From the IMG/VR virus record IMGVR_UViG_3300031669_000001, positions 248,001 through 312,000 of that record: a stretch of 64,000 nucleotides of DNA; one strand, written 5' to 3'. Below the pieces are notes generated by a model that saw nothing but the letters and a program-made list of their open reading frames with translations, ran no database searches and had not been told where the DNA came from. Below, in pieces: positions 44,881 to 51,299 of the stretch. The translations under genes and the position numbers were made by a program. The stretch's first letter is position 1. The number at the start of each line of letters is the position of its first letter.

Positions 44881-45984
44881 TTATTTTGACAAAGATTTTG
44901 ATAGATTTTTTGATAATTCATCTTCAATCAATTTAACATTTTTAATCAATCGGGCATCAGTTGGCTCAAATTCAAGTGCTTTTTTTGCCAAAGTCAATGA
45001 TTCTTCTTTAAGACCTAAATTATAAGCTGCTATAGCACAATAATCATAAGGAAAAGAATACCAAGCGGCGGGCTCACAAATATACGACATCGGCTTCTCG
45101 GTGATCTGCAACATTCGTTTCATGGCAAAGTAGAGACCATGCCAATTTTGCATCTGATAGTAAGTTTTTCCAAGGTCTAACCATGGCTCACGTTCACCAA
45201 TAGCTTCAGCGCACGCTTTCAAACCCCAAATTTCAGCTTGCTTAACGTCACCCTTTTCAAGGTAGCATCTAGATAGGAATCTCATAGAAGCGCAACGCTC
45301 AGCATCCCACTTAGCACGTGGAAGAGATAGATGTCGCTTCAATTCATCGATAGCTTTGTCATACTGTTTGTAGTACATGTATTCTCGACCGAGATAGTGA
45401 GAATTTCTGTCATCTTCAGGTTCATCTCTACAACCCATCTCCAATAGAGGTAGGTAACTTCCTCTAGACTTTGTTTTATCAGGATAATGAAAGAGCGTGA
45501 AGTCATGACAGTAAGTTTGAACTTCTTTGATGTCATAGTTGTGAAGAACTTCATGGACAGGTTTTACCCAACGATAACCTTTGCGAGAGTGAATCTTGTC
45601 ATACCAAAAAGTGGTCCCAGGTCTACCATCTGGAAGAGTGTTCCAGACGTATTGATAGCGAAGTCTAGTTGTTTCAGGAGTCCATGCTTTTTCGATCGCA
45701 GCTCTCCAACCTGGTGTAAGAACCTCATCAAGATCGATACAGACGCAGACGTCTACATCTTCTGGAACGAACTGTAATGATGCATTACGAGGAATGTCAA
45801 ACCTCCACGGCTTCATCTCGATCGAGTGAACTATCGCACCTTCATCCCGAAGCATCTGTACTGTGTTGTCTGTTGATCCGGTGTCAGCAACCACGATAAG
45901 GTCAGCTTCATCTTTGATAGAAGCCATGAAGCGCTTTACAAACTTTTCCTCATTCTTACAGATTGTGTAAACTGCTATCTTCAT
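44881..45984 (-). CDS. GT2 glycosyltransferase with TPR-like C-terminus
   Basis: AVYTICKNEE, VVADTGSTD.T, FDIPRN, IDLDE (DxD), VHE; helical TPR-like tail. Confidence 0.9.
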   Translation of the reverse strand: MKIAVYTICKNEEKFVKRFMASIKDEADLIVVADTGSTDNTVQMLRDEGAIVHSIEMKPWRFDIPRNASLQFVPEDVDVCVCIDLDEVLTPGWRAAIEKAWTPETTRLRYQYVWNTLPDGRPGTTFWYDKIHSRKGYRWVKPVHEVLHNYDIKEVQTYCHDFTLFHYPDKTKSRGSYLPLLEMGCRDEPEDDRNSHYLGREYMYYKQYDKAIDELKRHLSLPRAKWDAERCASMRFLSRCYLEKGDVKQAEIWGLKACAEAIGEREPWLDLGKTYYQMQNWHGLYFAMKRMLQITEKPMSYICEPAAWYSFPYDYCAIAAYNLGLKEESLTLAKKALEFEPTDARLIKNVKLIEDELSKNLSKSLSK

Positions 45985-47000
45985 TTTGCTTCCTTTATCT
46001 GCTTTGTAAGTTGATCAAATCTTGTTCCCCAACAACCTGCGTTATATTCGTAGCCGTATGTACGCTCTGTGATCTTTGCTGCACGTTCCATTGTAGCAAC
46101 AGCATCTGATTGTCGACCAGCTTCAAGATAAGTTTGTGCTAGATAAACAACGTATTCACGAACCTTAGGTGCATGCTTGACTACGTTCATCATGTTCATG
46201 ATCGCCGAATCATAATCCTTCTGACGCTTGTTGATTCCAGAGAGTTGATAATGTAGAAAGGCCTTATCAGAATCAGGTAATGTGAGAGCATGCTCAATCG
46301 CTTCTGCCGCTTCTCGATAGAAACCTGCGTTGATATATTCACCTGCTAGAAATGAAAATGTCTTCCAACGCTTCTTATCTTCGATAGCAGACTGTTTAAG
46401 CATCGTAAGATAACTTCCTCTATTCTTTGAGGTGTCTGGTTTTTGAGTCATTTGAATGTCTTTGAGCCACCTAACTTCATCAGGCGTACCATCACACTTA
46501 ACAATATGTTCGTGAACAGGAAGCTTCCACATATAACCATGTCGAGTGTGAATTCTTTCATGCCAATGTTCACTTACATTGCTGTTAGTTGTCTGCCAAT
46601 CCCAGATCGTTCTGAACCTGTGGTGATAACGATCATGTGGTTTACCTCTAGCTGCGATATCTTCCTCAACTGCAGTCTTTAAGATTTGGTACCAACCAGG
46701 CTCCAGCATCTCATCTGCATCAATGGAAACGCAAATATCAACATCACTTGGTAATGACATGAGAGCTGTATTGCGCGCATCGTCGAAACGCCACGGACTA
46801 ACGAATATATTTTTGACGATAAGATTTTTATGTTCTTTGCTTAAATCTGCTAAAATGTCGATTGTCTCATCTTTTGATCCAGTATCACAAATTACGATGG
46901 AATCAGCTTCTTTTATCGATTCATAACAACGTTTTATGAATTCTTTTTCATCTTTGCAGATCATGTAAATGCCTATCTTTACTGTCATTAAATTCTCCAT
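45981..47000 (-). CDS. GT2 glycosyltransferase with TPR-like C-terminus (paralogue)
   Basis: GIYMICKDE, ICDTGSKD.T, WRFDDARN, SIDADE, VHE. Confidence 0.9.
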   Translation of the reverse strand: MENLMTVKIGIYMICKDEKEFIKRCYESIKEADSIVICDTGSKDETIDILADLSKEHKNLIVKNIFVSPWRFDDARNTALMSLPSDVDICVSIDADEMLEPGWYQILKTAVEEDIAARGKPHDRYHHRFRTIWDWQTTNSNVSEHWHERIHTRHGYMWKLPVHEHIVKCDGTPDEVRWLKDIQMTQKPDTSKNRGSYLTMLKQSAIEDKKRWKTFSFLAGEYINAGFYREAAEAIEHALTLPDSDKAFLHYQLSGINKRQKDYDSAIMNMMNVVKHAPKVREYVVYLAQTYLEAGRQSDAVATMERAAKITERTYGYEYNAGCWGTRFDQLTKQIKEAK

Positions 47001-50000: not shown

Positions 50001-51299
50001 GCTCCATCTACAGTTACAGGCCCAACCGGTGCGCAAGGTTTAGCAGGCATAGGCTTAACAAACATGGGAGCTTGGTCACCAAGCGGTGTCTATTATGAAG
50101 ACAATTATGTCTTCGCTACAGGCTCTATAGCTCCAAGTTCAATGTGGATTCTTCAAGTAACAGGCCCTGTTGGTCCTACTGGAGTTCAGCCAAACCAAGA
50201 TACAGCCGATTGGGTAGAATTTGTTGCGCCTGCAGGCCCAACAGGAGTTACAGGTCCTACAGGTCCTACAGGATTTACAGGTCCACTTGGACCAACTGGC
50301 GCTATAGATCCAATTACTTCATCATTCTCTGGAGTATTGGCAACTTTAACAGGCACCGTCAGATATTATCATTGGACAGATGTTTACTTATCTGCAGTTT
50401 ACATGTCTGTTGGAACTACTTCGTTGGCAGGCAGCATTGTCATAGACGTGCTGAAGAATGGTGTTTCAATTATGGGCGGAGTCTATCCCACGATTGCTGC
50501 AGGATCTTATGTCTCAACTGAAATTGCGATTACTCCAATACTTTTGACGACTTCAGATTATTTGACTATCAACATAACGGCTGCAGGTACAAGTGCAGCC
50601 GACTTAACAGTTTATGTTATCAAGACCGGATCAGGTCCAAATCAAATCACGCTAGTAACAGGACCTACAGGATTTACTGGTCCTACAGGTGCTCCATCAT
50701 TTGTTACAGGTCCTACAGGCGCATTTGGAGGACCTACAGGCCCTACTGGCCTTTCAGTGACTGGTCCTACTGGTCCTACAGGCGCACTTATAAATTTAAC
50801 CGGTGATGTAACTTCAATAGGTGCGGCTACAACTTTAGTAACTTCATTATCGCACTCTTGGACAGGTAAGCAGACATTTGCAGGTTCAAGTACAGAATCT
50901 GCTATCTCTTTTAAAAATGGTACAGAATTAGTAAACCTTATCGCGGCTGCGCCTGCAGTCACGGAAAATTTATACGTCGCATCAGGCTCTGTAACTTACT
51001 ATACAGTTGCTGCTGTTAATAATTGGACTGCAAACATTTCATTCTCAGCAGGAACAACAATGGCTACCGCGCTGACAGTTGGAGATTCTATTACGATAGC
51101 AGTTCTTTCCACTCAAGGTACGACTGCCTATTACGCAAGTGCAACACAGATAGATGGCAATGCTGTTACTCCAAATTGGCAAGGTGGAACAGCTCCCAAT
51201 GCTGGAAACGCAAGTGGAATTGATTGCTACTCCTATACAATTATTAAAACGTCGGCTACGCCGACGTATACTGTTTTAGCTGCATTAACTCAATATTAA
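47067..51299 (+). CDS. Very long collagen-like (GPT-repeat) fibre protein, 1410 aa
   Basis: About 1000 aa of interrupted G-X-T triplets; globular C-terminal domains. Confidence 0.9.

Follow-up and report, generated by a model that had tools for sequence, protein, structure and literature searches.

We analysed a stretch of 64,000 nucleotides (positions 248,001 to 312,000, referred to below as the window) of IMGVR_UViG_3300031669_000001, a 345-kb viral contig with matching DNA in soil metagenome runs. The subject is a group of three adjacent genes that may form a glycosylation system for virion fibres. Two of them encode glycosyltransferases (GTs) of family 2 (GT2) with C-terminal tetratricopeptide repeats (TPRs), which we call GT-A and GT-B, and the third encodes a collagen-like protein of 1410 amino acids (aa). 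The two GT genes are co-oriented, the stop of GT-B overlapping the start of GT-A by 4 bp, and they diverge from the collagen gene across a short AT-rich gap (Table 1). One weak minus-strand promoter-like site was found in the gap (47034-47006), not above shuffled expectation. A preliminary description, made from the sequence before any database search, had given this same arrangement, and the map of open reading frames (ORFs) agrees with it exactly.

Table 1. Positions in the window of the GT pair, the collagen-like proteins and their neighbours
Feature	Positions	Strand	Basis or remark
GT-A, 367-aa GT2 + C-terminal TPR, A-type subfamily	44881-45984	-	Pfam, PHROG, alignments, AlphaFold2 (AF2) model, SgtA homology
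GT-B, 339-aa GT2+TPR, B-type subfamily	45981-47000	-	Pfam, PHROG, FastTree clade
AT-rich divergent intergenic region, 66 bp, GT-B/collagen	47001-47066	.	ORF map
Collagen-like fibre protein, 1410 aa	47067-51299	+	Pfam Collagen PF01391 E 8e-36; PHROG tail-fibre families
Segmented G-X-T collagen, residues 8-996	47088-50054	+	within 1410-aa protein; short non-collagen inserts
Globular middle domain, residues 1081-1198	50307-50660	+	within 1410-aa protein
Short collagen stretch, residues 1199-1241		+	within 1410-aa protein
C-terminal beta-rich tip domain, residues 1245-1410	50799-51296	+	AF2 model, BFVD matches
Gly_rich_2-domain protein, 294 aa, directly 3' of collagen gene	51301-52185	+	Pfam PF21722 E 7e-25
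Second G-X-T collagen-like protein, 908 aa	5634-8360	-	130 triplets, 53% Thr at Y
455-aa protein with short C-terminal collagen region	8362-9729	-	29 triplets, 8 with Thr at Y
ThyA-fold protein, probable dCMP 5-hydroxymethylase; context, probably outside the system	43721-44683	-	fold matches
dTMP-kinase-like gene	42583-43293	-	
dNMP kinase	18789-19379	-	

The 1410-aa protein was found to contain 265 G-X-Y triplets in 51 runs of at least three, the longest run being 13. Threonine occupies the Y position in 146 of the 265 (55%), in line with the earlier statement that it fills most of these positions, and proline occupies X in 126 (48%). The tally of threonine-bearing triplets was GPT 85, GAT 20, GST 16, GVT 6, GFT 5, GYT 5 and GWT 4. 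The repeats are often broken by inserts of one, two and four residues, for example SFVT and STVT, and the predicted triple helix is segmented rather than one continuous helix. Two further G-X-T collagens had been described at 5634-9729; both are real, and the 908-aa protein is rich in threonine and has an 11-residue motif in common with the 1410-aa protein, but only a minority of the triplets in the 455-aa protein carry threonine at Y. In a soil DNA run with source-like sequence, the repeats at 47226-49600 assembled as many short contigs with alternative joints, skips and small indels, while the flanking GT region came out clean in a single contig; the repeats of the ORF may therefore vary in number and order within the population, or part of their arrangement may reflect a choice made in assembly. 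Low-depth contigs from an RNA library matched the collagen gene, GT-B and the ThyA-like gene, which is not proof of transcription, as DNA carry-over is possible.

Both GTs were recognised by the Pfam family Glycos_transf_2 (PF00535; 33.6 bits for GT-A and 43.7 bits for GT-B, with a cut-off of 23.3), carried C-terminal TPR matches in Pfam and matched phrog_13126 over full length. They are 32% identical over 324 residues, which bears out their earlier designation as GT2-TPR paralogues. The motifs D34-T-G-S-x-D39, D84-x-D86-E87 and H144-E145 of GT-A were invariant among 32 aligned family members, and GT-B retains the catalytic motifs, its DxD reading D-A-D. The AF2 model of GT-A, with a predicted local distance difference test score (pLDDT) of 94, consists of an alternating beta/alpha N-terminal half with the GT-A fold, followed by a TPR superhelix of helical repeats from residue 177 to the end. 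When the whole protein was compared with solved structures, the best folds were those of the peptide S-glycosyltransferases SunS and ThuS (7msn and 7msk; E 4e-16, template modelling score 0.63, identity 16-18%). The nearest solved relatives by sequence and profile were SunS and the flagellin O-GlcNAc transferase GmaR (profile E 1.9e-10), and all three of these enzymes modify peptides or proteins. The resemblance to SunS is at the level of the fold only, as the NCBIfam SunS model TIGR04195 gave 27.7 and 17.1 bits for the two window GTs against a cut-off of 350. The GTs had no match to the T4 alpha- or beta-glucosyltransferase or to other DNA GTs in sequence, profile and Foldseek searches of the PDB. 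A likeness of the TPR half of GT-A to the collagen-peptide-binding domain of prolyl-4-hydroxylase alpha (Pfam E 2.7e-4, PDB E 0.004) was also considered and rejected, as it was lost among generic TPR matches when the family profile was used.

The family to which the two enzymes belong is large, with more than 7000 proteins among 8000 scored candidates, and GT-B falls in the same hidden Markov model (HMM) family as GT-A with 385 bits. Distant members with 27-37% identity, labelled 'beta-1,4-glycosyltransferase', occur in cultured jumbo phages (Pseudomonas PaBG, and Erwinia, Dickeya and Lu11 phages). In PaBG (locus L002, NC_022096.1 178630-179904) the GT lies between tail-fibre and head-maturation genes and has no adjacent collagen.

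We found that the family extends to SgtA, a characterised enzyme that glycosylates a collagen. SgtA of C. difficile has 358 residues and 10 cysteines, with a GT-A domain at residues 1-260 and four TPRs at 262-358; its gene lies immediately upstream of bclA3, and the enzyme adds beta-O-GlcNAc from UDP-GlcNAc to threonines of the GPT repeats of BclA3 (PMC7157674). The preliminary description had cited SgtA as a GT2-family enzyme acting on the adjacent BclA3, in agreement with this paper, whose authors did not find the extending transferase of C. difficile (PMC7157674). The bclA3 gene was searched for with a pattern back-translated from the published N-terminal peptide of BclA3, which gave no match in GTDB genomes and 14 loci in metagenome contigs. 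In one C. difficile-type contig (L293), an ORF of 358 aa with 10 cysteines lies 81 bp upstream of bclA3 on the same strand and fits the published description of SgtA. The family HMM matched this ORF end to end (E 3.9e-38, HMM positions 4-353), and GT-A aligned with it by BLASTP at 23% identity over 359 residues (E 2e-22). Furthermore, a profile built from A2, one of our two family alignments (A1 and A2), aligned with it in hhalign over 338 columns with a probability of 99.5%, and this alignment includes the GT half as well as the TPR half. The direct alignment of GT-B with the same ORF extended over the N-terminal 160 residues only (E 9e-10).

The gene neighbourhood of the family was then surveyed using the best 80 family matches in each of two collections, IMG/VR and GTDB. 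The IMG/VR search confirmed at least 546 viral stretches, and 79 foreign loci were examined. A viral locus entered the upstream count if its contig reached 9 kb or more beyond the GT on that side, and the downstream count if it had 6 kb or more there; the bacterial upstream count used GTDB loci with an upstream flank of 5 kb or more. The downstream flanks of the viral loci served as an internal control for phage type and composition. Among the viral loci, a same-strand, threonine-rich G-X-T collagen ORF was present upstream of the GT in 26 of 30, often ending 3-600 bp before it, and such an ORF was present downstream in 1 of 40. The preliminary description had proposed the co-occurrence of GT2-TPR genes with GPT collagens in phages as a check, and these counts bear it out. 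The same order was seen in the lake actinophage DSL-LC01 and in one faecal contig. The best 80 GTDB matches, at 49-54% identity, came almost all from spore-forming Bacillota, and in these a collagen abutted the GT upstream in 28 of 48 loci and downstream in 1 of 53. Some of the bacterial partner collagens (L271, L258) carry a BclA_C domain. After single-linkage clustering of the GTs at 70% identity, the pairing was found in 30 of 44 testable clusters, and the signal does not come from a few near-copies. As the juxtaposition recurs across many independent loci, chance does not explain it.

The composition of the partner collagens was compared with that of random viral collagens, taken as a second control from a composition-blind (GGN6)n scan. 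The GT-linked viral collagens had a median threonine fraction at Y of 0.61, and 93% of them reached at least 0.4; in 116 random viral collagens the median was 0.13, and 22% reached that level (Fisher p 3e-17, a value that overstates the independence of the loci, which are related sequences). The reverse test, from collagen to GT, relied on a generic (GGNNNNNNN)n scan in place of a collagen-protein query, as the 1410-aa protein itself returned 5 foreign loci only, too few for this purpose. A strong family GT was present in 1 of 118 random collagen loci, and more distant GT2-TPR or GT2-TPR-GT4 proteins in four. Thus the GT predicts a threonine-rich collagen, whereas a threonine-rich collagen does not predict the GT. 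Larger and more distant GT2-TPR proteins also lie beside collagen-like ORFs in unrelated viral contigs (L200:1137-3311(-), L086:19166-21220(-), L171:1414-3435(-) and L136:2364-5624(+)). The one in L200 is fused to a GT4/GT1 domain and the one in L136 has two GT2 domains, which suggests single-chain 'primer plus extender' versions. The ThyA-like protein as a single query returned no contig besides the source contig and was unusable as a control set, and nucleotide searches of the phage collection gave no match to the source DNA, no close relative having been sequenced there.

We also examined the C-terminus of the 1410-aa protein. Its last 166 residues gave a beta-rich AF2 model (pLDDT 82). The matches of this model in BFVD, with E down to 8e-18, were C-terminal regions of collagen-repeat proteins and tail-fibre proteins, from uncultured Caudovirales and from cyanophages. 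A PDB fold search with this tip domain gave nothing convincing, the best match being a phage capsid spike (E 5e-3), and residues 1012-1410 had no Pfam match to the TNF-like BclA_C domain. In other viral loci the tip domain again forms the end of GT-linked collagens, or it stands as an ORF of its own (163 aa), which in some loci follows a large structural protein and is followed by a tail assembly chaperone and then the GT. In L022, L029, L040 and L045 the stand-alone tip ORF has no collagen repeats and precedes a 375-aa protein, a Phage_tail_APC chaperone and the GT (in L029, ORFs 1759-2247, 2257-3381 and 3377-3901, with the GT at 3914); the GT thus accompanies the fibre module in phages without the collagen as well. 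Homologues of the Gly_rich_2 protein were found upstream of the GT in nine other GT-linked viral loci (among them L010, L015, L016, L038, L052, L061, L066 and L067), as well as in the collagen-seeded locus L103, and the 294-aa protein probably belongs to the same fibre module. These results support the prediction that the region of the collagen gene is a fibre and host-recognition module. Elsewhere in the window, an RnlA-like gene of the 'RNA ligase and tail fibre attachment catalyst' family (phrog_562) was noted at 16475-17701 (-), and an endolysin-domain gene (4673-5230, -) adjoins the second pair of collagen genes.

The two GTs appear to have been paired for a long time. A second GT type, present in the Bacillota loci L210, L216, L217, L220, L225 and L227, is 37-41% identical to GT-B, and in L217, L220, L225 and L227 this B-type GT sits between the collagen and an A-type GT. 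In a FastTree analysis GT-B clustered with nine such bacterial proteins at 100% support, and GT-A fell in the A-type clade. Since the two fall in separate clades that are shared with bacteria, the A/B split predates the phage lineage. A division of labour between GT-A and GT-B is more likely than redundancy on this comparative evidence. The preliminary description had proposed one priming and one extending transferase; two primers with different sugars or acceptor contexts are equally possible, because both proteins keep the catalytic motifs and the TPRs and belong to two ancient subfamilies. In several Bacillota (L210, L225, L227, L263, L271, L273 and L283), two or three tandem family GTs follow one collagen gene (up to B, A, A), which suggests a so far undescribed decoration of exosporium-type collagens in several steps or with several sugars.

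Collectively, the homology to SgtA, the peptide-GT fold, the conserved gene order, the enrichment of threonine and the phage-type fibre C-terminus lead us to propose, with a probability of about 70%, that the GT2-TPR pair O-glycosylates threonine at the Y positions of phage collagen-like fibres in the manner of SgtA. GT-A and GT-B would be soluble, cytoplasmic enzymes that combine the GT-A fold of GT2 with TPRs, use nucleotide sugars and depend on the DxD motif and a metal. Late in infection, they would put sugar on threonine, and probably also on serine, at Y of the G-X-T repeats, the TPR half gripping the extended Gly/Pro-rich acceptor chain as the GT half transfers the sugar. The target would be the adjacent 1410-aa protein; its 908-aa paralogue is a likely additional substrate and the 455-aa protein a possible minor one. 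The outcome would be virion fibres with up to hundreds of glycans per trimer. We infer the acceptor, the sugar, the order in which the enzymes act and the benefit, which might lie in a triple helix stabilised without hydroxyproline, in shielding, in altered adsorption or, as the preliminary description had suggested, in an interaction with mucus or extracellular polymers (EPS). The core claim of the preliminary description, that the GTs glycosylate threonines of the adjacent virion-fibre collagen, thus gains comparative support, although we hold modification of DNA to be a stronger rival than was stated there.

That rival holds that GT-A and GT-B glycosylate 5-hydroxymethylcytosine (hmC) in the phage DNA, in one operon with a dCMP hydroxymethylase and a kinase-like gene. 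The ThyA-fold gene follows GT-A after 197 bp, the dTMP-kinase-like gene lies beyond it, both on the strand of the GTs, and a promoter and terminator scan of 43500-47300, in which matches were at or below shuffled expectation, found no terminator-like site between the GTs and the ThyA-like gene. The best PDB matches of the ThyA-fold protein were the CMP hydroxymethylase MilA and the T4 dCMP hydroxymethylase (gp42), with E of about 1e-20, ahead of thymidylate synthases (TSs) at 1e-11 and weaker, and it has Asp at the position of TS Asn177. It is therefore predicted to be a probable dCMP 5-hydroxymethylase and, since the window also contains a separate thymidylate synthase (phrog_85, 11528-12298, -), the phage probably makes DNA that contains hmC. 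Many phages glycosylate their hmC DNA. The order collagen, GT-B, GT-A, ThyA-like is also found in relatives at 70-85% identity; in the closest ones, L289 and L290 (85% identity), GT-B and GT-A are separated by an ORF of 206 aa, GT-A and the ThyA-like gene by one of 230 aa, and these inserts (9424-10044 and 11073-11765 in L289) have no Pfam match and no counterpart in the window. Phages are known to carry genes for GT-A-fold DNA glycosyltransferases beside ThyS homologues (Pyle et al., Cell Rep 2024, preprint). We nevertheless consider this explanation improbable. No ThyA-like homologue was found within 10 kb of the GT in any of 159 other family loci, whereas a threonine-rich collagen lies upstream in 54 of the 78 loci with adequate flank, and the closest homologues stand beside BclA-type collagens in Bacillota chromosomes. 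Moreover, the family is homologous from end to end, TPRs included, to a proven protein O-GlcNAc transferase, and the structure searches led to enzymes that act on peptides and to no DNA GT. Two divergent modules meet at the GT pair, and its closeness to one of them is therefore likely to be incidental. DNA glycosyltransferases had been called less likely in the preliminary description despite the ThyA-fold gene; the collagen partner and the lack of ThyA-like neighbours at the other loci uphold that judgement, which had dismissed too lightly a probable dCMP hydroxymethylase in conserved synteny.

The enzymes could instead act on another protein of the fibre module or virion, such as the Thr/Ser-rich tip domain, the Gly_rich_2 protein or capsid and tail proteins. 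The loci in which the GT follows fibre genes that have the tip domain and no collagen repeats (L066 in addition to the four given above) and the recurrence of Gly_rich_2 homologues upstream of the GT speak for this, as does the report that mycobacteriophage GTs modify the C-termini of capsid and tail-tube proteins (Freeman et al. 2023, as cited in PMC12619734). The bacterial cassettes, however, usually consist of collagen and GT alone, with neither tip domain nor Gly_rich_2 protein, threonine at Y is strongly enriched in GT-linked collagens, and SgtA's own targets are GPT repeats (PMC7157674), so that we regard a different protein acceptor as unlikely. It is very doubtful that the GTs modify a glycan of the host envelope (lipopolysaccharide, teichoic acid or capsule) so as to exclude superinfecting phages or convert the serotype. 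The PHROG and GenBank labels 'beta-1,4-glycosyltransferase' and 'LOS glucosyltransferase' on family members point that way, together with some weak structural matches to the wall-teichoic-acid GTs TarS and TarP, but these labels were assigned automatically. We found neither a membrane segment nor a lipid-carrier partner, the whole protein including its TPR half is homologous to a soluble protein-modifying enzyme, and the conserved synteny is with fibre and collagen genes rather than with polysaccharide loci.

Several observations weigh against glycosylation of the collagen. Next after the GT pair in the window comes the gene for a probable dCMP hydroxymethylase, on the same strand and not set apart by any terminator-like site. 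Close relatives keep this order, and such a neighbourhood fits the pattern by which DNA-hypermodification clusters have been flagged elsewhere (Pyle et al. preprint). GT-A is only 23% identical to SgtA, and the alignment of GT-B with SgtA is confined to the N-terminal 160 residues. Most G-X-T collagens in the random viral sample have no such GT nearby, and therefore such collagens do not in general require glycosylation by this family. In several GT-linked viral loci the fibre genes lack collagen repeats, and the acceptor could therefore be another fibre component. The phage members of the family are known from their genes alone, and the loci that were compared are related to one another.

In a separate part of the window we noted an NAD salvage set of a nicotinamide phosphoribosyltransferase, a fusion of nicotinamide mononucleotide adenylyltransferase (NMNAT) with NUDIX, and a second NMNAT-like protein (36694-38178, 40256-41413 and 32929-34020, all on the minus strand). 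The set is syntenic in the relative L292 and may serve NAD regeneration against host defences that deplete NAD.

In our literature searches we met no account of a collagen glycosylation cassette encoded by phages, nor of how widely one occurs; the logic of enzyme and substrate is already known from SgtA and BclA3, and phage virion glycosylation from mycobacteriophages. If the GTs do glycosylate the collagen, many uncultured phages, given the number of viral matches, would put glycans on their host-recognition fibres, with effects on adsorption, on resistance to proteases and antibodies and on persistence in soil or mucus, and with a bearing on phage ecology and therapeutic phages. It would also correct a default annotation, as phage GT2 genes are routinely taken for genes of DNA protection or serotype conversion, and a GT2 gene beside a hydroxymethylase would otherwise be flagged as a DNA modifier. 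Phage fibres would be linked to the BclA/SgtA exosporium system of Bacillota, and the cassette would offer a natural toolkit of enzyme and substrate for thermostable recombinant collagens without hydroxyproline. Cultured jumbo phages such as PaBG would be tractable isolates for asking what the GT family does in phages. A wider proposition, to which we give slightly less than even odds, is that densely O-glycosylated, mucin-like collagen fibres are a widespread, hitherto unrecognised trait of soil, freshwater and gut phages through a two-gene collagen and GT2-TPR cassette exchanged with spore-forming Bacillota, that phage fibres and the exosporium 'hairy nap' are counterparts in evolution and mechanism, and that glycosylated threonine generally replaces hydroxyproline as the stabiliser of collagen helices in prokaryotes and viruses.

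Among known systems, the DNA-modifying enzymes share only their surroundings with the window pair. Genes for the T4 alpha- and beta-glucosyltransferases and for the GT-A-fold 5hmC GTs of Pyle et al. adjoin a pyrimidine hydroxymethylase or ThyS-like gene, as in the window, whereas these enzymes have no sequence or fold match to the window GTs, TPR domains are not mentioned for them in the preprint, and it is collagen that is the conserved partner of the window family. Mycobacteriophages offer a precedent in which phage GTs encoded beside structural genes O-glycosylate virion proteins; the acceptors in the work cited are the C-terminal tails of capsid and tail-tube subunits rather than collagen repeats (Freeman et al. 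2023, cited in PMC12619734). SunS and ThuS are the best solved match to the whole two-domain architecture and use a peptide acceptor, but that acceptor is a Cys or Ser of a small helical peptide, and the window contains no glycocin precursor. Listeria GmaR and other flagellin-modifying GT2-TPR enzymes resemble the window pair in their GT2 homology and follow the logic proposed for it, a GT2+TPR protein acting on Ser/Thr of a surface filament protein; GmaR differs in being larger, in doubling as an anti-repressor and in having flagellin as its substrate.

The collagen and GT2-TPR cassettes of Bacillota (Oscillospiraceae, Lachnospiraceae, Brevibacillus, Desulforamulus and others), on which our literature searches found no experimental work, are closer. 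Their enzymes are 49-54% identical to GT-A and 37-41% to GT-B, the order is collagen, B-type GT where present, A-type GT, and the collagens are rich in G-X-T; unlike the window genes, they are chromosomal and co-directional rather than divergent, and the BclA_C domain on some of the collagens points to the exosporium. SgtA and BclA3 of C. difficile have in common with the window system an enzyme of about 360 aa in which a GT-A domain precedes the TPRs, a GT gene that abuts a GPT-rich collagen gene, homology from end to end and the motifs DTGSTD, DxD and P-[VI]-H-E-V. The two systems differ in that sgtA lies upstream of its substrate gene on the same strand, whereas the window pair diverges from the collagen gene and comprises two enzymes of different subfamilies. 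The window collagen ends in a phage fibre-tip domain, whereas the C-terminus of BclA3 is predicted to have transmembrane helices (PMC7157674), and the setting is the spore for SgtA and BclA3 and the virion for the window pair.

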